A stretch of 64,000 nt of DNA from Tubulanus polymorphus (taxonomy: Eukaryota; Animalia; Nemertea), in assembly GCF_964204645.1 (NCBI RefSeq), contig NC_134031.1, positions 15,177,807-15,241,806 of the forward strand, read 5' to 3'. How positions within the stretch are numbered: position 1 is the first letter of the stretch; each line of letters starts with the position of its first letter. Of the stretch, positions 3,683 through 45,500 are shown piece after piece. The notes below the pieces were generated by a model that saw only the letters and a program-made list of their open reading frames with translations, was not told the origin of the DNA and searched no databases. A program made the position numbers and the translations under genes.

Positions 3683-6600
3683 CTATTTTTTGCGAGTGAG
3701 AATCGCAGGAATACGTCTCCTACTGTCGGCCATATTGACTGAATTAATCTTAAATACACCGGACGCGTTTGAGACATCTGTACCATCCCCTACAGCAGCG
3801 GGTGGAGGTTTCGGTGGAAGTGGAAGAGACGTGAGACTGTTTCCGCTATTTCGTCTGCTACTACTAGATGTGGATAGACTACTCGTTACACGCGGAGGTG
3901 TCTGATATCCACCTGGAAAATAAAAACAAAATTCAAGTTAGTTTCTACACAAACATCAGGAGAAAATTTCAACGTTTATTTGATGAATTTGGACCAACGA
4001 CGCAGTTCTAGGAAACACAGATAAGTTGCGAGACAAAATGAGATATCTTGAAGTTAAAGTTAAAGAAGTTAAAGTTGAAGTTGAAGTTGAGTTAAAGAGG
4101 ACTTTTTGACAATCCTTCAAAACAGTGTAAAATGGATATAAAACGATGATTCATCTGGACTGCACAGTTTCACTTCTGGGAAATATCCCCAAAAAATATC
4201 AGATGTCAGACAAAAAAGTAGACTTTAGACAAAATGGTTATCTTCAAGTTGATATAGTAAACTGAATTAGTATTGAGTTAGACGGATACTGGAAGTGGGA
4301 GGATGTTTATAGATTACCTGACGGTTTTTTCAATGTCAGTAGTTGTTCCCGTGCCTCGCTTAGAGCTTCAGTCAATTCGAATCTTTCCTCACATTCACGC
4401 CGTACAGTTTCTTGTAACAAAAACACCTTGAAAATATAGAAAACAAAACATCTATAGTTTGACTATAGGTTCTACAGTGTTGTTGGTGCTCTTAAGAGGG
4501 GAGTGTCTCACCTCATCTTGTAAACGTTTCAATTCTTCATCTTTATTTGTTTGATCTGATTGTAAATTATGAACGAGTTCCTGTGATTGTTTTAGAGACA
4601 GTTTTAGTGATTGTAATTCCTCTTCATTCCCGACATCCAAACGACCTAAACAATTATAGACAACACCGGCTACATGAAAATCAATTATCAGGACTCAGAG
4701 TTCCACATAACTGTGGAACCAGGTTCTGAACTGTGGAACTGGATCCAAAACTGTGGAACCAGGTGCTGAACTGTGGAAGTGATTCCAGAACTGTGGAACT
4801 AGGTGGAACTCAGTCCAGAACTGTGAAACTGGATCCAGAACTGTGGAACTGAGTCTTGCACTGTGGAACTGAATTCTGAATAGTGAAACTGGATTCAGGA
4901 CAGTACTGTGGAACAGGATCCAAGACTGTGAAACTGGATCTAGGATTGTGAAACTGAATCCAGGACTGAAACTGGATCCAGGACTGAAACTGGATCCAGA
5001 ACTGTGGAACTGAGTCCTGCACTGTGGAACTGAGACCTGAACTGTGAAACTGGATCCAGGACAGTACTGTGGAACTGGATCAAAGACTGTGGAACTGGAA
5101 CCAGAACTGTGAAACTGGATCCAGGACTGTGGAACCGGATCCAGGGGTGTAGAACTGGGTCCAGGAATGTGGAACTGGCTCCAGGACTGTGGAACTGGAT
5201 CCACATCTGTCCAGGACTGGTTGATTGATTCCTCACCTAAACGATCCTCTAAATCCCGAATTATTAACTTTAGGTTTTTCATTTCTTGTTGAAGTTCGGA
5301 TTCTTTATTTTGACAATGTTTCCTACAATCAGTAAGTTGTCTCTGTAAATCGGTCACCTCTGTTTTACGTCCGGCTTCAATCGATGATAATTGACGCTGA
5401 AACTGTTTAGAAAATTGTTCATTTGAAAATCAGAAATTTGTCCATAAAAGAAAACATATAACAGAGAGATTGTACGGCATGAATTTCAGTAGAATTGAAC
5501 TAACCTTTAATTCTTCATCTTTAGCATTTTTAATATACTTTTGAATTAATTCTTGATGTTTTTGACGCTCGATTTGTAATTCCTGAAATCAAAATCAGTT
5601 GATTATAGAAAACCAGTGAATGATGTTAAAAACAAGTTTTGTTTAGTTTTCAACATGGGAGATTTAGTTCACGCAGCCTACCGAAGCAGAATTCTCTTTA
5701 AGACGTTGTTCCACCAGAGCTAATTCTGCTAAATGTTTCGAACGCTCTTTCTTCAGACCATCTTCTAACTAAACACGAAGAAATAAAGACAATACAGTAG
5801 AATCAGCTTAATTCGGATTATTTGGGTACGACAAAATGCATCCGGTTTACGGGAAATCAGGATTAAAAGTCATTTTCTTGTTTATTTATGAACAAATGGA
5901 CTGCATATATCGTCCGGATTAGACCAGGATTCAGATTAAGCCGATCCGGATAGTGGGTTAGACTGTAATTTCAGTAATTCCTGAAGGAGCCGTGTTAACC
6001 TGGAGTAGAATAAATACAACGAGTCGAATAGTACAAATAGGTTAACTAGTTTATTAGACACACAAGCTTTTGCTACTAGAGTATAGTAGCTTCATCAGGT
6101 GAATGAGGGCAAATTAGTTCAATTAGATGAATAAGAATCCTACATTTACAAAATGAATTATACCAGCAGGGTTTACAGTTGTAAGGCCAGGATAAAAAGA
6201 CGTACTAAGAAAGACTTTTACTGCAACTTTAGACCCAAAACGGAGCATTTTTTGACTCAGAAAGTACTTTCCAGTAAAATGAGGGTCCATAAGAAAGCAT
6301 TTTTGCACTAGTCATTTCTCACTAGTCATGTAGACCAGTCATATATTCCAGGGTAAATCCATAACACTTTCCTGTATATTCAATCTTACTGACAATTGAC
6401 TTACCAGGCCTAAGTAATAAAATACTTCAACTGTTGAATTTGTGAAAAATGCGTGCGAAAAGTACATAAAAATCTAATTTAGGACTTTTTTTATCAGAAG
6501 GAAGGACTTAGAGTCAAAAAGAAGGACAAAGACGATGTTTATCCCTTTCTCTAAAAGGACAAAGAAGGTCTTGGAAGGACCACTAGAAACCTTGACCCCT

Positions 6601-9600
6601 GTAATCTCATTTACTGATCGGGAATATTTTCAAACCTTTTGAGGCCAGTTGTCAGCTTCGGCCATTTTATTTTTGAAACTTTCTCGGAGTTGTTCAATTC
6701 GAGTTTGATGCGAAAGAATCATCGATTCTCGTTCGGATTTTATAGATTTCAACTCTTCCTCCGTCGACGTCAATAAACGCTTGATTTCTTCAGTTTCATC
6801 TGTAAAAAAATAACCTTGGATTGAAAATCCATGTTCTCCACTTCCACCAGGCCTCGATAAACAGATTAACTCTTAACCCTTTCAATGCATCTACACCGCA
6901 GTGCGGTGTACGAATCAGTGATGGATTTTGCTAGTACACCACACTGTGGTGTATTGATTTAATTAGTAATTACAAATTATCTCACTTGAAAGATGGCAGC
7001 ATCTGTCAAACATAGTGAAATATTAGTAACTAACGATACACCGCCCCAGGGTGTAGACGCATTATAGTGGTATTCCCGTTTTTCAACACACTAGGGTGGA
7101 ATTTTTCAGAATTTTCAAATTATCTCTAGCACTATAGGGTATTAATTAGCCAGCACTGAAAGGGTTAAATCGAATTAGGACTTTATAAGAAATTTATCGA
7201 TAAACCGGACCAAGGTCTTGGGGGAAACTTCAAAATATTTGTTAGTCGTTCAAAAACTGAATAATCAAAAATCAGAAACAATTACTCTGTCAGAAATATC
7301 GTTTTTGGCAGGAAACTCCGAGGAATCAATAGTTACGATCCCGGTTCTTTGCATGCGGCTAGGCGCTCATGTCATGAACCGTTTGCACAAATCACTATTG
7401 GCGTAACATTTTGCGCCTCGAAAAAGTGGACGCACTCGATCAAAAGTGACGGCACAGGACGGTAAACCAAAAATCAAACATCCAAAACAATTACTCGTTA
7501 TTCTATTGACGTGACGGCAATGTCATGAGTTATCAACAAATTTGGATACACTATTTACAAAACTATGGCAGTTTTTAGATGAAATTGAGAGTCACTTACT
7601 GAGAGACAAATTTGCTTTACGATGAATTTCTTTCTCCGACTGTTTTTGTCGTTCGAGTTCGTTTTTAAAGTTCGTAGTTTGCATTTTCAACTCGTTCAAT
7701 TCGTTTTCTTTCTGTTTCAGTTTATCTTGCAACCTATAAAAAAAATATATTCGTCACAAATTCGGCGAAAAAACGTCAGTAAAAACTGAATTCGAAAACA
7801 TTCGAAAGTGAAAAAAAACCACGGAATTGCGCAATTCCTTATTTGTGATTACGAATTAGAAAACCTTTTCGTGTATCTGCAAGGAAGGATCTGTCCCGTT
7901 TAATACTCACAATGATATACTCTGTTCCAAACTAGTTGTAATACGTCGATTCTGAATTGAACTGTCGCTGATTTCTTTCGTTTTGTGACCGATTTGTTCT
8001 TTATATTGTTCACATTCTATAGAAATCATACGAGACTTCGATGTTTCTTTCTCCAAATCTTTCTCGAGCCCTAAATATAAACAAACAACTTTAGATCTAT
8101 CAAAAACACTCAGATATTAACTTCACATTGAAAAAAAATTCCTTTCGGCAAAAAGAGAGACAGTGATAATTATGTTATAACTAAACTACAGTGTGTTCAA
8201 AATTCTGCGGCTTGTGTGTGTTGTAACTCGCAATTCAAAATTTTGTAACATACAAATTCTTGAGCATATTTCATATGGATTTTAGGCTGAATGAATTATC
8301 ATTAAATCATTATTAATAGAGAGACTCAGATCTACTGTTGTGTGAGTTAAATGAAGCAACAGGATCCAGAAATAATTGAACTTACCTTTAACAGTTTGTT
8401 CAAGTAAGATACATTTGTTGCGTAACGAACCACAGTCTCGAGATTCCGCCCTCAATCTCAATAATTCACTCTCGTTCTCACTCAATATTTCTGAATATTT
8501 CTCGCTCTCTTTTCTCAATTTCGTAACTTCTTCTGAACTCTTTTTCAATTTCATTTCGATGGCTGAAAACTCTATAAAACCAGAACCGCATAATTATAAA
8601 GCTGACATGAACTTTTTGAACCTGCACATGCACATGTTAGATATTGATTTTTAATTACCTGTTTGATACTGTTTTTGTAGCTGTGTAAACAGGAACTGTA
8701 ATTGCGAATGAAATTGTTGAATTTGATTCCGTTGATTTATGAAATCGTCTCTTAGCGACGCCAACAATGATTTCTGTTGAGTTTGAGATGAATTCAAATA
8801 ACTCATTCTATTTTTACAACTTTCTAAAGTCAACCTGGAAAACAAAGAAGCAATATTGAAATTAGAAAAACTGGGGCTGCAGTTTCTCAAAAGTTGGTTA
8901 AAGTTAACCACAGTAGATAGTTGACATAGCGACAATTAAAAGTTCATTGCTACTATGATATTCATCTGCCGGTTATTTTTAACCAATTTTTGAGCAACTG
9001 GTCCCAGGACGTTAACATCATCTTTGTGAAAAAGATTTTTAGAGATTGACCTGTTTTTCTCAGCATCGTTCACAGAAAACGATAGTCTATCTTCCATTGT
9101 CGTATAATCGCAATTCATCGTCGTAATTAATTCCTCTTTATTCGATAATTCTTGCGTTAATGAAGAAATTCTGTAATAGATAATGTAAATAATAACTTAT
9201 TCAGCCTAAGATCCATTCCATGCTCGTCAGCCTTACATTATATATAAAAATAGAACATAGAAACAGAAAAAACTAAAACTGGTTAAATCAAAAGCTTTGA
9301 TGAACAAATTGGTTTCCAGCTTAAGATTCAAATACATCGATTGATTGACTTGATTTAATCGGACTAGGTATAGTGATGATTTCTGAGTCGTGCTAGTTTA
9401 ACCCTTTCAGTGCTGACTAATCAATACCCTATAGCGCTGGAGATAATTTGAAAATTTAAAAAAATTCCACCCTAGTGTGTTGAATAACGGGAATACCACT
9501 AGGCGTGCGTCTACACCGCGGCGCGGGGTATCGTTAGTTACTAGTATTTCACTATGTTTGACAGGTGCTGCCATCTTTCAATAGAGATAAAAACTAATTA

Positions 9601-10008
9601 CTAATTAAATCAATACACCGCACACCGCATTGCGGTGTACTAGCAAAATCCATCACTGATTCATACACCGCACTGCGGTGTAGACGCACTGAAAGGGTTA
9701 AGCGTATCACACTAGACGGCGCTTACTTACACATTTTCTTTATCTTTCATATTTTTCTCGTACTCTCCGATGACTGTCTGATGTTTTTTCAACTCCTCTT
9801 TAAGTCTTGTCTCCCTTTCTTCGCAGCCCTCGTAGAATTTCAGTCGTTCTTCCATTTTTTTCAGTTTGTCCTCCAACGCTTTGATCTCGTTGTGTATGAG
9901 GTAACTGACTCCGCAGAATTTACAAACAGTTTCATCGCGTTTCATCTTACGAATGTTCTCCGGTAGAGGGTGAACCGGGGTCGTTATTTCCAAACGATCG
10001 TTTTCCAT
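3683..10008 (-). CDS. LEKR1: LEKR1 (leucine-, glutamate- and lysine-rich protein 1) ortholog; multi-exon coiled-coil protein
   Basis: N-terminus MENDRLEITTPVHPLPENIRKMKRDETVCKFCGVSYLIHNEIKALEDK resembles LEKR1 'HALPEEI..M..EKVCKYCGVSYLI'. Near the C-terminus, LQETVRRECEERFELTEALSEAREQLL (~4320-4425). Last exon ~3683-3912 ends ...RRRIPAILTRKK-stop. Confidence 0.88.
4705..5215. repeat. 20-bp minisatellite (CTGTGGAACTGGATCCAGAA-type) in a LEKR1 intron
   Basis: Tandem array; same unit as 28440-29086 in reverse orientation and as the TIR of MITE family B. Confidence 0.92.
5793..5967. mobile_element. Short TA-flanked MITE (CAGT...ACTG termini, Tc1/mariner-pogo-like); relatives at ~13309-13440, 15345-15710, 18605-18768, 43500-43660
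   Basis: TACAGTAGAATCAGCTTAATTCGGAT ... GTTAGACTGTA; shared AATTCGGAT/ATCCGGAT internal motifs among copies. Confidence 0.6.
6873..7168 (+). mobile_element. piggyBac-type MITE family A, copy 2
   Basis: TTAA-CCCTTTCAATGC ... GCACTGAAAGGG-TTAA; body aligns with 2096-2389. Confidence 0.9.
9398..9701 (-). mobile_element. piggyBac-type MITE family A, copy 3 (inverted)
   Basis: TTAA-CCCTTTCAGTGC ... GCACTGAAAGGG-TTAA; body is the reverse complement of copy 1. Confidence 0.9.
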
Positions 10009-10159
10009 CGTTGCCAACACAGCTGCTGCAATAAAGTTTGAATTTATTTGACCAGGAAGTGAGTTGAATAAGCGATCTTTTTTAAAGATTTAATGAAGTT
10101 AAATTTAAAACAGATTGAACTTGATAAACATCAAATTTAACTAATTGAGGAACTTACGG

Positions 10160-10575: not shown

Positions 10576-13500
10576 ATGGCTGAGGAAATACACATCCCTT
10601 CAGCGGCGTACACCCCGACCAGTGAGGTCGACGGTATCAGTCCCGAGGTGACTCTTATACGGCACGACAACACCTCCTCCGATATAAACCTGACCCTCGG
10701 AGGGGCACCCCCAAGCGGTTCACCGAGCGTATCGACTCCCGTCGATAATATATTCACTAAAAAACATGAATCCGATCATAAACATTTCATCCCTCAACAA
10801 CCTAGCCCCGCCTCCACAGCTGCTAGACCAGACAACAATACATCGGTCGTCAGTAGCGACAGTGTTACCAGGCAACCGTCTCAGACGTTTGTCGTCTCGG
10901 AAACGTCGACAATCGGTTTGAGCAAAGACGATACTTTAGAGAGTATAAAAAGAGCTCGAGCGAACCGCGGAGAACCGGACGATAAAGAACCGGAAAATGA
11001 GAACCAATTCATACCTGATATTCATATGAATTTACTCGCGGTCGAGGTGGCTTCGATCGATTCTCGGATGGGTCTGTTACGAAGTGTCCAGGCAACACCC
11101 GTCAGTCGCAGTATCCTGGCAACACCCAACAGTACGTCGACATTCGAGGATGAGCGATCATCACCGCAACAACCGCAGCAGCAGCAGCAGCAGGAGCTGA
11201 GACGAGTTAGTGATAATAAATCAGTTCTCTCTGAAGAGAATCTCGCAAAACTTGAAAAAGAAACAATGTCCGAAAAACAGCGTAAATCGAACAATAACAA
11301 CACTACGGGGGTCAGATTCGGGAGCACGACAGTAACCGAGATACCTGAGGAGAATGAGGATTACGATACCTCACCGGTGAGTAACACACCTCATATGAGG
11401 GGAGAGGAATATCTCGCAGGGGGAGAGTAACACCTCGTTTGGGGTTCGCTCTGGAGATAGAGATAGCTCTGACGTTTGAGAGATATTTCGTTTTTATTTG
11501 TAGACTGTAGATGGCACCAGTAGCGTTTTCAGTACGGCAGTCGACGAAGAGATGTTAGCTAAAAACGAAGAAACATCGTCGCGACGAAATACTTTATTTC
11601 TGCCGGAAAACTGGAGTCAACTTAAAAAACCGACTCTAACGATGGATGCGGTGCTCACGTCGAAAGCTAAAGAACAGTAAGTCCGAAATAGTCCTTAACT
11701 CATTCAATTCTTTCTTCGATTCTGTGAAAACTATCTCTGAATTGATTATTGATCTCCGTAGAAAATCTGTGACTCCTTCCTTTATAAAAACTAAAGGAAC
11801 GCTAGAATCGCAACTTCTAGTCGGTCTCAGAGTTTACGAGGAACTTACTTTCAACAAAGCTGCCAAGCTGTAAGTTATTTCTATTACTCGCCAGATTAGA
11901 GCTAAAAAATAGAGCAGAATAGAGAAAATCGGCTTCTAGAATAGAACCACATTTATATTTCATTCGTATTTCATATTCATTTACACGTTTAAAATCGAGG
12001 CTTTCACTAAACTAACTAAATATCAGCAACCAGTCTCACAGTTCCACAGGTGTATGTTAAGTTTTGACCGAAACTTAACAGAGATTTGCAGAACTGATCC
12101 CAAAGCTTTTTAATCAATCCAGCAGTATTAATTTTCAGCACATATTTTAGAATATTTCATAGCATTAAGATATCTGATACAGGGTCCGATCTAAGCACAT
12201 GTCCGATCACCCGGGACAAGTACATTCTCATTAGAGGAAGTAGGTTATCATCATCATTCGTGCAATTTTATGCCTCCAAACTTTTTTCCCACTCGATACA
12301 ACAGGACCCAGTAACACAGTTGTGAGTTAACTCTGAGTTAAAGTTAGTTCATTTTCAGTGATTTAACTCAGAATTAAATCTTAACTCGGAACTGTGGAAC
12401 TGGACCCAGATGATTGTGCCACCAATCGGACTGCCTGTGTAGGGCAAGATGATTTTTGAGGGGGCTAGTGAAATTTCAGATATGCTTGCCCCCGGGCAAA
12501 TGGCTTTTATTCATTGTAGATGTATTTAAAAACGCACCTGATCCGTTCACTGTTGTTGTTGTCGATGTATTTCAGTTATCAAAATGCTGTAGAGTTTATG
12601 AACGAAGGTGATTTTGAACGAGCTTTGATGCCATTGAATAAAGCTATTAATCTGAAATCTGAAGAGCCACAATTTTATGCTTGTCGTGGAGAATGTTTGC
12701 TACAACTTACTGACTTCCAGGTAATATTCCCCTCCCTCTCCCCTTCCCCCCTCTCCCCTTCCTCTCACCTTCCTTTTCTCTCTCCTCTCCCAGCGCCATT
12801 GCTTTTGAGATGTTTGAAATTGAATGAATACATTATGTACGTTTATTACGTACGCATAAAATTTGAATTTTTCAAAACCCTCCCCTTACCCCTGTACGTA
12901 AAATCGGCCAGTTTTTCATATTTATGAAACATTACAGTATGCAATTACACTCGTCCCTCCTCCCATAATGCCTACTACCAAAAACTTCAGAATCTGATCT
13001 TTCTTCATTGAAAATTTGGGCTTTGAGGTATGGTCTGATGTTTGTTTTTCTGTTTTTGCGTGTGTTTCAGTCAGCTATATTGAACTATAAGAAAGCACAC
13101 AGTTTACAACCGTCCGATCAACAGCTTTACTCGAAACTCGCCTTCATATATTTCTTCCAAGGTCAAACGTTGTTTGATCAGAAACTGTACTCGGAAGCTC
13201 TCGAATCGTTTACTAAAGCGGCGGAAATGAAACCAGAAATCAGAGGTTATCACACCAGAAGGTACGTGTGATGTCATAGGGGGATGTCGACATGCAGTGT
13301 ACATATAGTACAGTAAAACCCACTTGATCCAGATTTTGGTCCAATCCGGAGAATATTTGCAGTCCATTCGTTCATGAAAAGAAAATGACTTTTAATCTGG
13401 ATTTTCCGTAAACTGGATTAATTTTCCTGTGTAGAGACTGATGAAGACTGTATATACCTCAGAATATGTAACAGTAGTTCATTCTCTCACTTTTACATAC

Positions 13501-16500
13501 ATGTGAGCCCAGTACTCAGAAAATCGGACCTATTTATTGAGGCACTAAGACTGGGATTAGTAATGTGATATTAACCGCTTAATGTAAACAAATACCTCAA
13601 TACCAAACGAATAAACATGCTTACATGATAGAATACATAAAAATGAATACAAAACGTAATGACATGTTGGTCCCAAATGATCAGAATTCTACTGTAGCAG
13701 CCATGTTTTTCTATGTATTTACAGTATAGCATGTTTAACAGCTCTTCACAGGCACGGAGAATGTTTAGCTCTGATTAATAAACGTCTGGAACAGGAACGA
13801 GACAACGCCGATTTATTTGTGATGAGGGCAAGACTTCATGATCTATTCCAAAACGTATGTTAATGATTCCCTCCGACCCCAGCCTGATTGCTGCATCCCC
13901 TTCAGCCTGAAACTCCCCCACCCCTTCAGCCTGAAACTCCCCTACCCCTTCAGCCTGAAACTCCCCCAACCCCTTCAGCCTGAAACTCCCCCACCCTCTT
14001 CAGCCTGAAACTCCCCCACCCCTTCAGCCTGAAACTCCCCCACCCCTTCAGCCTGAAACTCCCCCATCCCTTCAGCCTGAAACTCCCCCACCCCTTCAGC
14101 CTGAAACTCCCCTACCCCTTCAGCCTGAAACTCCCCCAACCCCTTCAGCCTGAAACTCCCCCACCCTCTTCAGCCTGAAACTCCCCCACCCCTTCAGCCT
14201 GAAACTCCCCCACCCCTTCAGCCTGAAACTCCCCTACCCCTTCAGCCTGAAATCCCCCATCCCTTCAGCCTGAAACTCCCCTACCCCTTCAGCCTGAAAC
14301 TCCCCCACCCCTTCAGCCTGAAACTCCCCCACTCCCTTCAGCCTGAAATTCCCCTACCCCTTCAGCCTGAAACTCCCCCACCTCTTCAGCCTGAAACTCC
14401 CCCACCCCTTCAGCCTGAATCATTCGCCCTCCTATACTATACTACTAAGCCTATACTCAATCAGCCCGGCACATGCACCTCCTTTAGCGTGAAACCCTCA
14501 TTTGGTGAATGTTTGAATATATATTTACAGAGTACACTGTGTTCATACGATGTAAAGGATGCTTTACTGTTAGACGCTGAACATCCTGAAGCGCTTACAT
14601 TATTGAAAAAGATGCAGGATAAAGCTAAAGAAAGTAAACAACAGGCAATTTCACTGAATCTTATCGGAAAACATCAAGAGGCTTTACAGAAAATCACGAC
14701 AGCAATAGAAACGGATCCGTCCTGCCCGGAATATCACGTGTTCAGGTATGGATAAATCATTACGAGCTGCCGCTTGAAATTGAAATTTTTAAGTTAACGT
14801 TTCTATGAATTTTTCTTTCTTTCACAGGGGCGCCCTCTACAGGAGAACGAGCGATTTCAATTCGGCTATCGACGATTATTTATTGGCTCTCGATAAAACC
14901 GATCACAACGAGGACAGTCCGATTTACATGGACGCTCAAAGACAGTTACTGCTGACGTACAACGATTTCGCCGTCGAATGTTTCTCGAAAGGTTTCTACG
15001 AAGAAGCCGTCGTTCTGTTGAACAAAGCGATAAAAGGAGAGAAACGCGAGAAAGGGCTTTATATCAATAGAGGAGGTAGGTGGCGCTCTAGACTCAAAAG
15101 TCCGGCTTGCTGTGAAAACAACAGTGATATATTTATTCAAAAACTAGCTATAAGCGAAAGGCAGTAAAATGTCTGGTAGAACCTCCGATAGACTGCCCTT
15201 CCATAAACCGGCTCCCCGCCTACCGCCAGGTTTTCTCAATTTACATCTCGATACATAGTAAAACACCCCCGATATACTGCCATACTCTCTATACCAAAAA
15301 TCGTTCTGCACCGATGTGGGCGGTAAATCGGGGGTTGACTGTAGTACAGTATAACTCGTTTAATTCGGATCGGTTTTATTGGGAATTCACACTTACTTCC
15401 GACTGAAATTCCAGTCTTAGTTCTTGAACCAATCTAACAATTAAAAACCAGTTTTAAGATTTAAGACCACTTTTGGACGGCCCTTGGCTTTCAACCACCA
15501 AAACAGCATTGCGACACCATGATGATAATTTCATAATACAGTATAAACTGCTTGATTTGCATCGGTTTTATTCAGATTTTGACTAATAATATTTTGGACT
15601 AAAATTCCAGGTTATTTCTATTCAAATGAGGGCGCATAATTTGGATTTCGTATAATTCTGACAAAATTTTCCAATCCTGAGTGATTCGAATTAAGCGAGT
15701 TCCACTGTACAACACATATTTTGAAAATCAAACTGAACCAATTGTATTGTCGTAATTTCAGATTGTTTCTATCGTCAAGGCGACCTCCACTTCAGTTTAG
15801 CAGACTATCACCAGGCGTTAGAGATCGACCCGTATGATACGAGTATCAGATCACGTATATCGGTGATACACAACGAATTCGGAGTGATGGAGTATCAGGA
15901 TCGCAATTTCGAGGAAGCCGAATCACGATTCACTCTCGCGATTCAAAACAATCCGAAAATCGGTCATTATTACGTTTCACGGTGTCGAGCTAGATACGTT
16001 TTAGAGGTGAGTCACCAGGGGGCGTTACAAGTGTGTCAGTAATTACTGAGTTCGAACCCGGGACCCCTCTGTACATCCTCTATTCAGCATCAGTACCGCT
16101 CTGAATGAGTATCAGTAATTACTGAGTTCGAACCCGGGACCCCCCTGTACATCCTCTATTCAGCATCGGTACCACTCAGAGAGTATTAGTAATTACTGAG
16201 TTCGAACCCAGGACAACCCTGTACATCCTCTATTCAGCATCGGCGCCACTCAGAGAGTATCAGTAATTACTGAGTTCGAACCCAGGACAACCCTGTACAT
16301 CTTCTATTCAGCATCAGAACCACTCTGAATGAGTATCAGTAATTACTGAGTTTGAACCCAGGACACCCCTGTACATCCTCTATTCAGCATCGGTACCACT
16401 CAGAGAGTATCAGTAATTACTGAGTTCGAACCCAGGACAACCCTGTACATCTTCTATTCAGCATCGGAACCACTCTGAATGAGTATCAGTAATTACTGAG

Positions 16501-31616: not shown

Positions 31617-32964
31617 TTAGATCTTCGACTGAAAATCGATTCATTCCATGACTTATATTCATTGTTACTGACGATGTCTGCCGGATTAAATCCAACTTCA
31701 CCCATGGCAACAGTAGCAACAATAGCATCAGTTGGTGAATTTAAGTTTGTTTAATTGGTTATGTTGATTGTGAGTCGCCCTTTAATGATGAGGGGCTCTG
31801 AAATTGACGAGGTGCTCTGTTATGGATGAGGTGTCTCTAATTGACGAGGTGTCTAATTGATGAGGTACTCTAATTGATGAGGAGGTCCTTATTTAAGATG
31901 CAATTTAGATGTAAATTATTTTTGATGTTTAATTCAATGAAATTGTTGTACAAACTTTATATTATCGAGAACGGATTCCATTTTTCATGGTTTATTATTT
32001 TGTATAATGGATCGATTCTCTGCCTTACTGTATTTATATACCAGGAAATTTAAAAAATCAATGAAAAAAAATGAATTTTGTGAATTATTATTATTTTGAT
32101 AAATTAATACATGGCCTATATTGCCAATGAAATGTTTGTAAATTCATTATTTCTATGTTAAATCGATTTATTCATCAAATGGGATCAATTCGTGTATTTC
32201 ATCCGTACTCGACCCGCAGAGTATCAATCTTTACTCGGAATACACCGTCGCGTGTCGCCACCTGGTGTACGAATTGTACACTGTAGTAGCAGGTGCGCGG
32301 TATATTGATTTACTAGTTGCTAGGATACTAGAATCATGGCGTAAACAAGTATAAACAGGTTTTCAGCCGATAAACGACGCTCGAGCTGCTGCTCTCCCTC
32401 CCGTCTCCGTTCGTGATTATTGGAATTAATCTTGAAAGTCATGCGCGATTTAAGGTAGTTGAAGTTTGTTATGTCGATGGAGGGGTTGGTATACCGGGGG
32501 TATCTCTTGCCGAGAAGCGCGAGGGATTCTAAAAATAGCAGTGACAAATATGACGACATGATGGTGTCCTTATATTTATTTGTGGCCAGTGTTGATGTTT
32601 GTTGTGTAAATATATGGCTTGAACGGAGAGGTTTCTGCCACCTCTATTAAAACTCGGAGGCCCTCTCGTTTTAGTCACTGAGCAGGCCTCCATATCTAAT
32701 TAGTGTGTCGTGTTCGCCAATAATCTGAACGGGTGTCAATTAGCCTATCATCACCACTAATTAATTACTGGTAATTAACACATGTAGTAGTACATAGGCC
32801 TAGGTTATAGTTTGTTTTTAAATTGGCATTAGATTAGACTGTTCAACTCAATCCCCCACCGACAGCAGGTAGGTGTTTTAGGACTTCTCTGGATTTTATC
32901 TTTCAGATTTTATCGTTAATTTTTGGTGAACATGTTTTTTAAATTTCAGTTTGTCGCTGTAGTA

Positions 32965-35063
32965 ATGTGCGAGTCAGTTACCAGGTTACCGACCCCTGGT
33001 GGTGGTAAACGTAGATCAGCGGCTCCGTTAACTACCACCAGCGATGAATCGGACGACGGCGACGTCCCGTCGGTGTCCCGCGCGTCTGCCGATATAGAGA
33101 CCGATAGCGCCGTGGAGGACTCATCTCCTCTATCTCCGTGTAGTGGTAGCAGCACGGCTAGCGGGCCGATCTATATCAGACCGCCCGGGTTTAAACATCA
33201 CGCTCACTCGGACAGAGCTGAAATCATCTCCAGACCGAGAATTAAAAAGAAGAAAAAAATCGTTATTTTACGAGATGGAATCAAAAGACAAGAAACGACG
33301 GTGACGCCAAAAATCAAACCTAAAAGAGGTGAGAATTTCACTACTGAGATCATTGAGATAGTGCCATTGATATATCATTGAGATAGGGTCAGTGACATAG
33401 CATTGAGATAGGGTCAGTGATATATCATTGAGATAGGATCAGTGATATATCATTGAGATAGGATCAGTGATATATCATTGAGATAGTGCCGCTGATATAT
33501 CATTGAGATAGTGCCAGTGATATATCGTTGAGATAGGGTCAGTGATATATTGAAATAGGATAGTGATATATCATTGAGATAGGTTCACCTATATATCATT
33601 TGAGATAGGTTCACCGATATATCATTTGAGATATATATAATTATATCATTTGATATATACAAGTGAGATGGGTTCACCGATATATTATTGAGATGGGTTC
33701 ACCGATATATCGTAGTAGTTCAATAGTTCATCAATATGTCATTGCAATTGCTCACCGATATATCATTTAGATAGGTTTGGTGATATATCATTGAGATAGT
33801 TTTGCGGATATTTGTGATAGTTCACTGATATATTGTTGAGATAGTTTCGCCGATATATCATTGAGATATTGAGATATTTGAGCGATATTTCAACGATATA
33901 TTGAGATATTTAAGATGAATCGTTGAGATTGCTGATATGTCGTTGCGAATTATTTTTGCTGATATTTCTTTACGTTGAATGATGAGATATTTGAATTGAA
34001 TGTTGAGAATTGTTTGATGAATATATTTTTAGAACCGGTACCGATGAGACTGAGAGCATTACCTCAATCATTCTGGCAACAACCGAACAAACCGCAGCCA
34101 TATTCACCAGCAGGCGTTTATCCGATACTACCCCCTCTGTGTAAGGGGGAGTCTAGTGACGAGGAATCAGGTATAACACCCCCTCCCCTTCCTTCCCCTC
34201 TCTGTCTCTAATGATGAGTAGAATAGATCATAATGTATTTATGTGTAATGCGCCGATAATGAATAGAATCAGTATGGTGTATAACACTACACTACATTTA
34301 TAGCCATTGTGTTGTGACCTTCAAACAATCATAATCCCTACCCCTGGGGCAACTGAGAGCACTAGTAATAATCTTTTATAATCCTCTCCTTTTTGGGGAG
34401 GACGCAGTGGCGATAAACTGGTTATTAATCACGTGTTTGTAATACGATACAGAAATCCGTCCGGTGACGCCACCTGAGGAGAATAACAACAATAGCGCGG
34501 CGCCGAGAGACAAGTCGCATAGCAACAACAACAACAACAATCACAGCTGTTATAACAATAAACCGGAACGTCAAATCACCGTAACTAACGCCGATTTACT
34601 GTTCAAACTATTCGAAGGAATCGAGGACAATTCGAAAACGAAAAAACAATCGTCGACTTTACTGAGGAGAAGCAGGTATGGCAGGTGCCATTACTTCCCC
34701 CTATGACATCAGCATCGCATTATAAAACATCAGTTTTATGTATTACATTTCAGATCGAAGAGGTTAACGGCGGGACCAGCAGGCGGAGCCACTGGTGCAA
34801 TCGCTCATAGAGTGACGTCTAAAACGACACCGATAGCGCTAATAGCAGGAGAGGATCCGTTCCTGGTCGAGGCCGTTACCGAGAAACTATTTCCGCAGCT
34901 ATCACTAGAGCACGGCAGTAAATCGTCGTCGTGCTCGTCGCATATGACCTCGTCGTTACATCTGGTAACACTAAAAGAAGGAGACCGATCGGTAACTTTA
35001 CCTTCATTAACCGTCGAACAAAATTATTCGCAAATGTTGTCGGAACTTGTTATGCATATCTAA
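32965..35063 (+). CDS. Uncharacterised ~344-aa, largely disordered protein with a YAP/FAM181-like TEAD-binding Omega-loop motif. Exons 32965-33328, 34033-34170, 34453-34675, 34754-35063
   Basis: Four GT-AG exons with compatible phases (1,1,2) give one open frame: MCESVTRLPTPGGGKRR...YIRPPGFKH...RPRIKKKKK...EPVPMRLRALPQSFWQQPN...IRPVTPPEE...RQITVTNADLLFKLFEGIE...LPSLTVEQNYSQMLSELVMHI-stop. Upstream non-coding exon donor at ~32869. Confidence 0.85.
33345..33960. repeat. Degenerate GATATATCATTGAGATAG-type minisatellite (intron); similar GATATC-rich tract at 35310-35590
   Basis: Direct. Confidence 0.85.
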
Positions 35064-36295
35064 TGAGAAAGGTAGCGACCTCTCTCTGCGGCGAGAGAGG
35101 TTGTGACCTCTCTACTGTGACCTCTCAGCGGAGAGTTAGTGAGGTAGTGACCTCTTAACTGTGACCTCTTTCAGCGGAGAGAGGGGTAACGAAGAGGTTG
35201 TGACATCTCTCAGTGGAGAGGTAATTGATATCGTTAAAGTGATTGTGAACAGTCAGTATTGTTGGAAGTTGTTGCGCGATTCTGTGATTTCATAATAGAG
35301 TCTCCACCAAGGGAGATACCGATATCTCGATATATCTGATACCGATATATCAGTAGATATCTGATACTGATATCGTTGGCACGATATCTCAATACATCTG
35401 ATTTTGGATACAATATATCTGATGCTGTAGCAATACATTTGATACGGATATCTTAAATTTGATGCTGATATTTCAATATGTATCCGATACAGATATATTG
35501 ACATCACGTGATATCTCAATGTATCTATTAAACGTGATGGTATCATTATTAAGGGAGATATCGGGTTAGTTGATATCTCAATATTTTGAGATATGTTGTT
35601 CCAATATCACTATGATTTCTGTTTTCCTACTATTAACCGTAGTGAGTTGTTATAAGGGGGTATGGGTAGAGAGGGGAGGAAGGGGGTTGTTAAGTGCTCA
35701 TTTCCAACTGATGCTCAAACATTGTTTTAAATGTTACTCTTACCGGGACCAAGATTCACTAAACGTCCAGAATGAATTTTTATCAGCTTATTGGCTGATT
35801 GCTGCGTATGCTGATTGGCCCAACCTGTGCTGCATGTGCTGATTAGTTATTATTAAAATCTAATAATTGCTGTAGATCTTTGTAATCTATACAAATTAGA
35901 AGCATGTTTGTAATCGGTAAATCCCACAGGGAGGGGTTGGGGGGGTTATAGGGGTCCTTGTATCTGTTCAAGTTGTGTTGTGTTCATTTTGTGTGTGTTT
36001 GCACTGTGTACTAAAAACTACTACTGCCATAGTCTTATTATAGATACCGTCCCTGGAGGAACTATGTACACTTCTGCTAGAGTAATTCTGGGACCAGTTC
36101 CAAGTTAGGATTTAACTCAGAGTTAACTCGTCGAAAATGAACGAACTTTAACTCCGAGTTAACTCTAACTCGGAACTGTGGAACTGGGTCCTGGAGTACG
36201 GGTAACCATCCTCCAGTTTTAGTTTTATATATTTATTATTGTTAAGTTGATATTTTCATTATTGCTTCGAATTTATTGTAATTTTGATTTTAGCG

Positions 36296-39585: not shown

Positions 39586-42500
39586 TCAACTGGTTAAATC
39601 TTTCAGGTTGTCGAGGAGACCTTCGGGTGTCAAAATCTGAGTCGAACCTACAAAATAAAATTCAACAATGCATCGGAGTTACCACGGAAATTGGAACGTC
39701 AGGGATAACTGAACTTACCGATGAGAACCTCCCAGTTTTTAACGGCTTGCGTCACCTCGTACGCACACCGCATCTCAGCGAACGAAACTCCACCAACTAT
39801 AAACACTATTAACCGGGGTCCGGCTTTATAACTGGACTGACCTTTCTCTTTATGCCACATTCCATAACGAGCACTACAAATATAAACATCATAGTGTCAA
39901 TGACTCAGCCACGACTCAAAGAGTCATCTGAGCTGACTGCACGACTCTAGAGTCATCTGAGCTGACTGCACGACACTCTTGAGTCATCTGAGCTGACTGC
40001 ATGACTGTAGAGTCATCTGAGCTGACTGCACCACTCTAGAGTCATCTGAGCTGACGCCATCACTCGGTTCATCAGTTGTGTTAAGTCAATAAATGAAGGA
40101 GGAGTCGATAAATACCTGACCGGTGCAGCTCTAATCATGGATCTACTGGAGGTTCCTCCCGGTAAATAAGGGTACGCTTTCGGATCTAATTTCTCATCGA
40201 CCGCGTCCTACAAACACAACATCATACACGCATAAAACAACCCTTAAATTCACGGTCAAACTTTCATCATGATAATTACCTCGATGATATCTTTAACGTA
40301 CGGAGTCCATCGGGACATCTGATACGCGTGTTCCAGAATCCGTTCTTTACGATTCAACGGTTGATACGGCTGATAATTCTTTCTGTTTCTGCCGCCCTAA
40401 ACACCAAACGAACGACATTACGATATCGTCGAACGAAATCGCAATATTTCGGATATAAGGACTCGAAATTTGAGGAAAATATTTATCATCAGAGATCGGT
40501 GAAACATTGAAAAGCCACATATAGCCACAATACAATATCATTACACAACATCAGTATTTTCAATAAGAGCCAGGTCCCAGGTTCCAGACCCGTCATTCAT
40601 TTGTAAAGGACCCGCCTGTTTTTTTAAACCTGCTTTCATTTCACGGAGTGTGAAATATTGCGGGACCCTCCTGTTTTTCAAAAGGACCTGGCTTGTTAAT
40701 TCCTTATTGAAAACACTGAACATGCTTATAAACAATTACAGTGGAACCTCTCATCATAACGAACTCGGATACAACATTAACGAGCTTGGATACAACGATT
40801 CATCGGATATAACAAATATAGAATTTCGGGTCCCAAGTAAGAAAATCTAATTAGTTTTCACACTGGATATAACATCTATTGGTTATAACGAACAGATTTT
40901 CTGTTCCCGTGAAGTTCGCTGTAACGAGGTTCCGTTGCAGTCGAAGCAGATAAAAGATGAAATGAAAGTATTCACATTCTAAAAACTTACAAATGCAGCG
41001 ATAACAGCAGCAGCAGCAGCAGCAGCAGCAGCTACAGCTACCAAAAGCAGCAGCAGCAGCAGCAGCAGAAGCTGCAGCAACAGCTACCAAAAGCAGCAGC
41101 AGCAGCTACAGCTACCAAAAGCAGCAACAGCAGCTAATCACAAACACTCATTGTGCTGGCGTCCTTGTATGCCATGTTGTTCATTTAACTTTTTTCTTCT
41201 TGAATAATTTTTAGATTTGTTCAAGGGGAAAGGGAAGAGGTATACTTACACAAGCACACTGGCTGTGAGAGAGAGGGAGGTGAGAGAGAGGGAGGGAGGT
41301 GAGAGAGAGGGAGGGAGGTTTGGGTGATACTTACACAAGCACATTGAGTATTCGTATAATCAAGTGCCGCTAAGAGAGGTAAGAGGTGCTATTGAGAGGT
41401 GCTGTTAAGATCGAAGCAGTGCCGCTGTTTAGAGGTATAGAGAGGTTAAGGAGGCAGGAACTACTTACATCAGGTAGTATTGGTACACCCGCTATCTGGG
41501 ATCTACTACTTACATCCTGTAGAATCGGAACTCCCAAATTCTGCATGTGAGTTATAATGGTTTTCTCGTTCTCAGGTATCTGAGCGTGCTGAACCAACTT
41601 AGCCAGATTCTCCTCGGTTATTCCTACAAAACATGTTCGCTTTAAAGCCGGTTATAACGAAACTCCGCGCAAACGGGGCCAAAATCGGTTTCTGTATCTG
41701 GTCGGAACTAATAACCGAATGCGCTTAACCCTTCCAATGTTGACTAAGCAATACCCTATAAGTGCTGGAGATAATTTGAAAATTTTGAAAAATTCCACCC
41801 TTGTGTGTTGAATAACGGGAATACCGCTATAATGCATCTGCACCATGATGCGGTGTATTGTTAATTACTTATATTTCATTATGTTTGACAGGTGCTGCCA
41901 TCTTTCAATAGAAATAAACTAATTACTAATTACACCAATACACCACAGTGCGGTGTACTAGCAAAATTCATCACTAATTCATACACAGCACTGCAGTGTA
42001 GACGCACTGAAAGGGTTAATTTCCAAACTATTTCCAATATATAGTTCCCACTAATTAACATTCCATTTCACTTAGTTTGACTATAGTCAACTAACTCTGA
42101 TAACCGAAGTCGGCCCGTGCGGGCGGGGCTAGGATTTTGGTACTGACCTCCCTTATAGATGACGTACAGCAAAATGATACGTATTTTATCGTAAGCCGTG
42201 ATGTTCTGATCGAGAAGAATAGGAACGATGTTTCGCATGTGATCTTTGATTTTCTCGCCCTCGGCGTCAGTTCCCATCGCCAAATCCTAAACACGAACAG
42301 TACAATATATACCGAACGAACTTCCGAGTCAAACTTAACCGAGGATATCAGGGGCGGATCCAGCCTTACCGCTTGTAGAAATGCCCTTCTATTTTTCAAG
42401 TTAATTAAAAATTATTCGATTTAAATGGCCAGTTTGAATAATCGAAAATGGGTAAACTTCTTAATTTCTTTGAATGATGTCAAAATGCCATATTTTAACA

Positions 42501-45500
42501 TGTTACACTAAATATCATACGGAAGGATTTCATGCCCCAAAGTAACTCCGCATCTTGGAGGCAAAAAATTCAAAATTTTCTATGACATAGGTGCCCTTCC
42601 GCAGATGAGCGGTACTCAGAAACCTAGGCTAGTTCCACCCCTGGAAATGAACGAGTTGTTGCTTCGAATAATCAACTGGGTTTCGAAACGTTGTATCCTA
42701 CCTGTTCAACTTTACACAGTTTATCCACGTGTCCCTGATAATGCTTCATGCAATCCTCGGCCAGGTGCAAATGTGTCGAATATTTACTCAGTTCTTTCTG
42801 ATATTGCGGCATCTTTTTAATCATTTGCGATAAATCTCTCATCGACGATTTGTCGTCGGATTTCATGCGTTTCTCGACCAGGAATGCTTTCAATTGTTTC
42901 GTAACTTGCCTGAAATTCATAGATTGAATCATAGTCACATTTAGAGTTCAATTAAGCCTATCTTAATAAGCCCTATAACCGATCTAATGATTTTAAGACC
43001 AGACCTAATTTACTTTAACCAAGGGGTTAACTCATTTCATTATAAATTGAGCTTACCCCGGATTAACCTTTCAGTGCTGACTTATTAACACCCTGTAGTG
43101 CTGAAGATAATTTAAAAATTTTGAAAAATTCCACCTTAGTGTGTTGAATAACAGGAATAGCACTATAGTGCGTCTACACCCTGGCACGGTATGTCGTTAG
43201 TTACTAATATTTCACTATATTTGACAGGTGCTGCCATCTTTTAAGAGAGAAAAATACTAATTACTATTTAAATCAATACACCGCAGTGCGGTGTACTTGC
43301 AAAATCCATCACTGATTCGTACACCACACTGCGGTATAGACGCACTGAAAGGGTTAAGGTTTATACTAGTCAATAAAACTGGTCCCAGTGGTTTAACCCA
43401 CAATCAATGACTGGTCCTTTGTCGATCCACTAGGATTCACAGGTTTGAATACTGATGGCAGTAGACAGTCATGCCTGATCAGCGTATATGAATAGATGTA
43501 CAGTAGATCACCTGGGACTGGAAAAGTTTGTCCGAATTAAAACGAAATCCGAATTATATTCTCCCAATCGACAAGAAATAACCGAGAGGACACTGGGAAT
43601 TTTAGTCCGAAATAAGTAAAAATCCGAATAAAACCGGTCCGAATTAAAAGAGTAGTACTGGATCCAGTTCCACAGTTCAAGATTTGCCTCAAGAGTTAAC
43701 TCATTGAAATAAACTATCCTGGTAATCTTAACTCGGAGTTAACTCTAACTCACAAGTGTGGAACAGGGTCGCTGTAGCGTAAACTTACTGCGAAACAATA
43801 GCTATATGCTGATGTCTGAGTCCACACCATAAATCATCGTTTTCATCCAGTAAAACTTCTTTCTCTTGAACGTCGCCGGGACTCACGGTGTTCTCATATC
43901 TATAACCGATAAAATCATTGTCAATTGTTAAACTCTGTCGCCTCGGCAAACTCAGGTAGGACCCACGGCGAGTAAAATCAACGAACTCACTTGTAAACGT
44001 CGTTATCGATCGGCAGTAAATCGTAAGCCATCGCTTGAAACGTCAATTCATGCAGCAACAACGAGACAGGGTCGAAACCACGGTCCAGAATCAATAACTG
44101 GGAACGATCTTTCTGAGGTCCCTGTTTAGAAATCAATATCATCTTTCATTCATTTCATCTACTTTCTTTTTATACCACATCTGAACAGTGTATTTAAATA
44201 TAGATCTAAGGCTATATTTAACCCCCTCTCCCGACCTCTACCCCTCACACGGTTTACCCCTCTACCTCTCCCCTCACATGGCTTTCCCTACTACCTCTCC
44301 CCACCTCTAACCCTCATATGGTTTACCCCTCTACCCCTACCCATATCCCTGACGTGGTTTTAGTCTACCCCTCACACGGTTAAAGCCTACCTCTCCCCTC
44401 CTCTACCCCTCACACGGTTTACCTCTCTACCTCTACCCCTCACATGGTTAAATCCTACCTCTCCCCTACCCCTCACATGGTTTAAGCCTACCTCTACCCT
44501 ACCGCTAACATGGTTTAAGCCTACATCTCCCTACCTCTACCCCTCACATCGTTTAAGCCTACCTCTCCCCTACCCCTCACATGGTTCAAGACTACCTCTC
44601 CCCTACCCCTCACATGGTTTAAGCCTACCTCTCCCCTACCCCTCACATGGTTTTAGCCTACCTCTCCCCTACCCCTCACATGGTTTAAGCCTACCTCTCC
44701 CCTACCCCTCACATGGTTTAAGCCTACCTCTCCCCTACCCCTCATATGGTTTAAGCCTACCTCTCCCCTACCCCTCACATGGTTTAAGCATACCTCTCCC
44801 CTACCTCTCACATGGTTTGAGCCTACCTATCCCCTACCCCTCAAATGGTTTAAGCCTACCTCTCCCCTACCCCTCGTATGGTTTAAGCCTACCTCTCCCC
44901 TACCCCTCATATGGTTTAAGCATACCTCTCCCCTACCCCTCACATGGTTTAAGCCTACCTTTCCCCTTCCCCTAACATGGTTTAAGCCTACCTCTCCCAT
45001 AGTGGCATCGTCTGCCTTGTAGGCATCGAGTTTCTGTTGAACCATCTGAGCGAATTCGAAGTTATTAGGTTGAAACGCCCCTCGGTAACGGATCGAAGGG
45101 TATTCACCCAGACTAGCGCACAGCGTGGCTAACTGTTCGGCGATCCGTTCCAGATGCATGTTACGTCCAGCCTGAAGTACCGGGTTATAGTAAAACTGAA
45201 ACGTCTGAGGAGCATCCAGAGAGAACACCTGCAATACACACACGAAATACCGTATAACACAATACGAGTGAACACTTACAACTCGTACAACATAACAACC
45301 CACTGAATGCCACACAAGGCATTATTAACAGGTTTGATGTTTCTTTTTCCCAATGGGGGTAAGATCAGAGAAGAACCTTAGACCAAGAAACCCTGTCGCC
45401 ACCAGGGTTTGAACCCATAAATTCTGGATTGACGAGACCAGTGACCGGCAGCTTAATACGTTCACTGCCACCTAGTGGTTTAATGTCCGGTCGCCATTGC

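Follow-up and report, generated by a model that had tools for sequence, protein, structure and literature searches.

Known elements in a new arrangement: probable TEAD cofactors of a conserved and apparently undescribed family

Introduction

Models of TEAD output rest on a short list of cofactors from vertebrates and flies, and it is the completeness of this list that is put in question by LOC141908299, a gene of the nemertean Tubulanus polymorphus. An earlier note on its DNA had described an orphan protein containing a YAP-type Omega-loop but no WW domain and had proposed it as a new co-regulator of TEAD. Our analysis leads us to a similar view of its function, assigning a probability of about 0.75 to the reading that LOC141908299 is a mostly disordered nuclear adaptor of an ancient and unnamed animal family, which docks on TEAD/Scalloped. 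This family is real, conserved and apparently undescribed, and its members are probable TEAD cofactors in which known elements are newly arranged.

Gene model and transcription

LOC141908299 is contained in a window of 64,000 nucleotides, the whole stretch of DNA that was analysed. It consists of four coding exons with a total of 1035 nt encoding 344 amino acids and a stop (345 codons), which are separated by introns whose GT..AG sites are canonical and whose phases (1,1,2) are consistent. Four sequencing runs, all from one study and with unrecorded library types, were checked. All three joints are found in a single contig of run X2, and the gene is thus transcribed and spliced as modelled, while run X1 covers the introns as expected of DNA. 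Each exon translation is included exactly in the protein library record P0001 (344 aa, equal to LOC141908299), which was used in local scripts, whereas single exons, homologs or alignments of these served as database queries. The features of the locus are as follows:

32418..32454, + strand: 3' end of an upstream, apparently non-coding exon (loose end in X2, donor; 5' end unmapped)
32965..33328, + strand: coding exon 1 (aa 1-121), with KR..SDE, SP-SSTASGP-x-Y-x-R-x-PGF and a lysine-rich patch; splice joint
33232..33258, + strand: basic patch, candidate nuclear localisation signal proposed from its K/R run
34033..34170, + strand: coding exon 2 (aa 122-167); splice joint, with the phase-1 intron before it shared by genes from Trichoplax to amphioxus
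34038..34085, + strand: putative TEAD interface-3 Omega-loop, aa 124-139 (equivalent to YAP 84-99), from Pfam PF15238, PDB alignments and invariant hot spots
34453..34675, + strand: coding exon 3 (aa 168-241), with RPVTPP, an Asn-rich spacer, the LxxLF helix and the first half of the AT-hook position
34599..34613, + strand: LxxLF motif (aa 217-221), candidate interface-2-type helix located C-terminal to the Omega-loop, from its conservation in the family
34665..34765, + strand: AT-hook position spanning intron 3, K-R-G-R-P-K-K in the family and a degenerate R-R-S-R-S-K-R in LOC141908299
34754..35063, + strand: coding exon 4 (aa 242-344), with the DP[YF]..LFP.LSLE block and a C-terminal beta-hairpin and amphipathic helix (alignment A2)

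The upstream exon was located from a loose end of the X2 contig at 32943, which matches 32418-32447 of the window, ahead of a GT donor at 32455, so that the exon ending at 32454 is joined to an acceptor at 32949. No in-frame upstream ATG was found in the translated stretch 32250-32454. The spliced 5' leader contains an upstream ORF of eight codons (32441-32454 and 32950-32962), with its stop two bases before the main ATG. In run X1, exon 1 displays an allele with an in-frame insertion of six bases at 33107 and several heterozygous substitutions between 33021 and 33072. Intron 1 is filled by a polymorphic 25-bp minisatellite (33349-33911), and a repeat of similar period is found downstream of the gene (35315-35374).

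Properties of the Omega-loop

The Omega-loop motif opens exon 2 (34032-34085, +) and is followed by a family-specific SP..LPPL tail. This exon matches the Pfam family TEADIR3 (PF15238) with 35.3 bits at a cut-off of 26 (E 1.2e-8), a score that exceeds those of YAP, FAM181 and PERCC1 of the same genome, whereas exons 1, 3 and 4 did not match any Pfam family. In a search of the PDB, the loop aligned best with FAM181A (6L9F, E 0.009) and with peptide chains of YAP1, to whose residues 84-99 it is identical at 11 of 16 positions. The loop described in the earlier note, including its agreement with YAP at 11 positions and its hot spots, is confirmed, and the basic patch of the type RPRIKKKKK is found at 33232 (+) as described. 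The absences that had been listed also hold: Pfam detected no WW domain in the exons of LOC141908299, and a motif scan of the protein retrieved neither HxRxxS nor VxxHF nor PPxY.

Extent and orthology of the family

The description of the protein as an orphan was, in contrast, wrong, since it has more than 120 full-length relatives in a deeply conserved family. With exon 2 as query, exhaustive phmmer searching retrieved 117 proteins, many aligning over their full length at 30-45% identity, and a limpet homolog as query retrieved 126. Named members are found in Hydra, Pocillopora and Trichoplax, among spiralians in molluscs, annelids, a brachiopod, a bryozoan and nemerteans, among arthropods in chelicerates, a millipede, crustaceans, hemimetabolous insects and one beetle, and among deuterostomes in echinoderms, the hemichordate Saccoglossus and the amphioxus Branchiostoma. 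Among the 120 matches listed for the limpet query, none bears the name of a vertebrate, tunicate, fly, nematode or sponge, an absence that is provisional because many matches are unnamed. A search for vertebrate kin with the amphioxus C-terminal region covered just 71 candidates, and owing to this coverage a loss of the family in vertebrates is suggested rather than proven. Long Asn-rich matches had been considered as fly proteins, an assignment that was rejected since their sole named close relative is from the rotifer Brachionus. In a feature search of the Atlas, all scores obtained for the amphioxus member were below 0.8.

The orthology of family members is supported by common intron positions. 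In the six genes mapped, from Trichoplax, a coral, a scorpion, amphioxus, Lineus and LOC141908299 itself, two introns are shared, one in phase 1 directly before the loop and one in phase 2 at the AT-hook position. No gene neighbours were found in common with the Lineus, Trichoplax, amphioxus, coral and scorpion loci.

Conserved anatomy of family members

Hot spots and motifs were counted in 85 aligned members, with shuffled sequences as control. The strict Omega-loop pattern is present in all 85 members and in none of the shuffles, and the motif noticed in LOC141908299 is thus conserved with all its hot spots. The equivalents of YAP P85, M86, R89, P92, S94 and F95 are invariant, that of L91 is leucine in 83/85, and the position corresponding to 96 is always W or F, with W in 83 members. 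TEADIR3 was matched in each of the 17 members scanned with Pfam.

The homolog searches that had been proposed as a check have defined a family, but the loop is not its sole conserved island, as the family has about seven conserved blocks. The N-terminal part contains KR..SDE, SP-SSTASGP-x-Y-x-R-x-PGF and a lysine patch, with a run of at least four K/R in 63/86 members. The loop with its SP..LPPL tail is succeeded by RPVTPP, an LxxLFxx[VI] helix and an AT-hook core, and in the C-terminal region by DP[YFC]..LFP.LSLE and a terminal LPSL..EQNYSQMLSELV block. Whereas the loop and the basic patch had been recognized in the earlier motif inventory, the LxxLF helix, the AT-hook and the C-terminal hairpin-helix were overlooked.

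LxxLF is found in 81/85 members compared to a mean of 5.3 in shuffles, and the extended LxxLFxx[VI] in 74/85 compared to 0.5, with its L and F being invariant in alignment A3. The spacing from loop to LxxLF has a median of 65 residues, and in the larger set [LI]xxLF follows the loop in 105/116 members, whereas LxxLF within 80 residues before the loop was detected in one. A median of 20 residues past the start of the helix motif, RGRP is present in 68/85 members (shuffle mean 0.56), although Pfam AT_hook did not match any of the 17 members scanned. The RGRP core is absent in LOC141908299, with runs X1 and X2 showing no variant at these bases, and it is missing or degenerate in 17/85 members of A3. 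Many gastropods, Bugula and the rotifer are among these members, a pattern suggestive of repeated loss of the core.

In an AlphaFold model of the Lineus homolog, the chain is mostly disordered with a helix at LxxLF. The C-terminal module is predicted by AlphaFold as two strands (52-63 and 66-77) followed by a helix (79-89) with pLDDT values of 82-96. Fold searches with the model of this module did not provide a match, the best values being E 0.48 in Foldseek, Z 2.9 in VIA and a TM of at most 0.43 in the Atlas, and neither did a sequence search of the PDB with the C-terminal profile. By eye, the C-terminus resembled the strand-helix of Tondu, an assignment that was rejected in light of an hhalign value of 0.1% and the lack of a Vg_Tdu match.

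Relationship to known TEAD cofactors

The LOC141908299 family is distinct from the five TEAD cofactor families known so far, all of which are represented in the same genome. At separate loci, T. polymorphus contains YAP (L004, a true YAP exon with the start of a WW domain), FAM181 (L006) and PERCC1-like (L005) genes, the latter two calls being based partly on sequence motifs that we take to be characteristic, and moreover Vestigial (L010, L003), VGLL4 (L011, L012) and TEAD (L016-L019). LOC141908299 is thus an ortholog of neither YAP, FAM181, PERCC1 nor Vestigial, as had been surmised. L006 and L005 were assigned by their N-terminal helix and helix-then-loop layout in comparison with published data (PMC9710580). 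The family profile matches the four Omega-loop genes among these essentially at the loop only, which further underlines its distinctness. The position of LxxLF also differs, preceding the loop anchor by 20-28 residues in YAP, FAM181 and PERCC1 of this genome and following it by 88 in LOC141908299.

FAM181A and FAM181B (PF15238; PDB 6L9F) resemble LOC141908299 in their W96 Omega-loop, the lack of a WW domain and a largely disordered chain. They differ by an N-terminal helix of their own (Nt-F) and an LxxLF before the loop, in contrast to the LxxLF after the loop, the AT-hook and the C-terminal hairpin-helix of the LOC141908299 family. With one FAM181 sequence as reference rather than a family profile, hhalign and phmmer did not find Nt-F in the family and matched the FAM181 of the genome at the loop only, in line with the N-terminal block described as absent. 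PERCC1 is likewise a small predicted TEAD cofactor with an Omega-loop and no WW domain that occurs in invertebrates (PMC9710580). It is, however, a human gene, whereas the LOC141908299 family is without vertebrate match and contains neither an Nt-P helix nor an interface-2 helix before the loop; in a comparison with one PERCC1-like sequence, neither Nt-P nor consecutive interface-2/-3 motifs were found, and only the loop aligned. YAP/TAZ/Yorkie share the loop with all hot spots and an LxxLFxxV-type helix, but the order of helix and loop is reversed and only the YAP proteins contain WW domains and HxRxxS, with no Pfam WW match in 17 family members and HxRxxS in 1/86. Vestigial/VGLL1-3 and VGLL4/Tgi are WW-free TEAD cofactors as well, and Vg and VGLL2 carry an Omega-loop, but their Tondu motif VxxHF is found in 0/116 members, a genome scan with PF07545 misses LOC141908299 and hhalign against Tondu gives 0.1%.

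It appears improbable that LOC141908299 is an ortholog of FAM181 or PERCC1 that has diverged, or that its family is already described under another name. The same loop with W96, an hhalign value of 91% against the PERCC1-like gene over the loop and the distance of about 317 kb to that gene on one contig would fit a diverged ortholog, but the FAM181 and PERCC1-like genes are separate, each with LxxLF ahead of the loop in one open frame, and the N-terminal helix common to both is absent from the family. A search of the literature open without subscription retrieved descriptions of YAP/TAZ, FAM181, C19orf85, PERCC1 and Vestigial only, and the consulted part of the PERCC1 supplement names no further family. 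No paper on the family was found there, and its members lack real names, being annotated as 'uncharacterized' or 'hypothetical' save for a few automatic labels that are unrelated. Still, public databases already tag family proteins with PF15238 and, in view of scores above those of YAP and FAM181 of the genome, curators may have noticed the family.

Proposed interaction with TEAD

The TEAD of T. polymorphus retains the pocket segments LLE-AVDIRQIYDKF and HHIYRLV, to whose residues we in part presume the corresponding roles. Other such roles were adopted from a published description (PMC10146773). The loop residues conserved in the family are those whose mutation breaks the YAP:TEAD complex (PMC7784741, PMC10146773). 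It is thus likely that the LOC141908299 protein docks TEAD at interface 3 and, with the pocket occupied by its Omega-loop, would exclude YAP from that TEAD molecule. In light of its intact docking loop, LOC141908299 has probably been overlooked as a TEAD partner in the output of the Hippo pathway. TEAD binding is in this case inferred from one 16-residue motif, and a nuclear location is assumed from the basic patches. There is a small chance that the segment is kept for another partner or an internal role and that its likeness to TEAD ligands is convergent or vestigial, as might be reflected in its continuation into a conserved family-specific tail (QPN..SP..LPPL) that is not found in YAP, and in the weak hhalign comparison with YAP and FAM181 of the genome (8%). 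Yet, the positions that never vary coincide exactly with the residues contacting TEAD, and the TEADIR3 score is above those of the YAP, FAM181 and PERCC1 proteins of the genome itself.

Given binding at interface 3, we regard it as possible, though somewhat short of an even chance, that the downstream LxxLF helix also occupies interface 2. The helix would fold back via a flexible linker of at least 50 residues into the interface-2 groove, either on the same TEAD molecule or on a second one, and thereby raise affinity. YAP 84-99 binds with a Kd of about 4 uM, which improves to ~60 nM once the helix is added (PMC7784741). A comparably tentative alternative keeps the core of this mechanism and differs solely in the second site: the protein would bind TEAD weakly at interface 3 only, with the LxxLF helix and the C-terminal module serving other partners. 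A precedent is provided by FAM181A, which contacts TEAD at interface 3 only and whose loop alone suffices (PMC10146773), and W at position 96 favours loop-only affinity (PMC7784741). The reversed order with its linker of median 65 residues and the presence of a loop without LxxLF in another ORF of the same genome (L001) point in the same direction, and LxxLF is a generic amphipathic-helix pattern that is located ahead of the loop in every known family checked. These arguments are countered by the very strong conservation of LxxLFxx[VI], with its invariant L and F, and by the fact that the family helix fits the YAP pattern LxxLFxxV (PMC7784741).

Beyond docking at interface 3, the AT-hook beside the helix would add a contact to AT-rich DNA in most members, with the core lost in T. 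polymorphus. The hairpin-helix at the C-terminus is the likely site for effector binding and probably serves either to recruit another co-regulator or to dimerise. The missing WW domain and HxRxxS argue against a YAP-style control by LATS and 14-3-3, although they are compatible with Hippo dependence, and regulation would more likely proceed via expression and via the SP/TP and serine-rich blocks conserved in the family. The full combination, in which an ancestral family lost in vertebrates, flies and nematodes would hold TEAD by two interfaces in reversed order and contact DNA by its AT-hook to direct target-site choice outside LATS control, we consider rather unlikely.

Implications for the TEAD network

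The retention of the family, with invariant contact residues, from Trichoplax and corals to amphioxus implies that the TEAD network of ancestral animals comprised at least one further member, which the main model animals appear to have lost. This would affect the interpretation of Hippo/YAP knockdowns in Hydra, annelids, molluscs, sea urchins and amphioxus; annotated members include LOC100210921 of Hydra and LOC586927 of S. purpuratus. The reversed order of loop and helix, if true, would also demonstrate the modularity of the two elements that bind TEAD.

Neighbouring and additional loci

A second Omega-loop ORF of ~205 aa (L001:1075-1689, -; G000:C1 at about 27.744 Mb) scores 34.4 bits with TEADIR3. 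It contains neither LxxLF nor WW, resembles the LOC141908299 family in the loop only and is located about 143 kb from the TEAD gene at about 27.888 Mb. No exact match was found in the protein collection and none in the Atlas, and L001 is possibly another type of TEAD cofactor. The PERCC1-like gene L005 resides at about 14.894 Mb of G000:C7, the contig of LOC141908299.

Within the window, a gene for a class I PI3-kinase catalytic subunit with PI3K_p85B and kinase domains is located directly upstream of LOC141908299 (21189 to about 31700, +), and a Sec1/Munc18-family gene is found downstream (about 41300-45400, -). Further upstream, a TPR-repeat gene (about 12500-16100, +) and a coiled-coil gene (4700-10100, -) are arranged in apparently divergent orientation.
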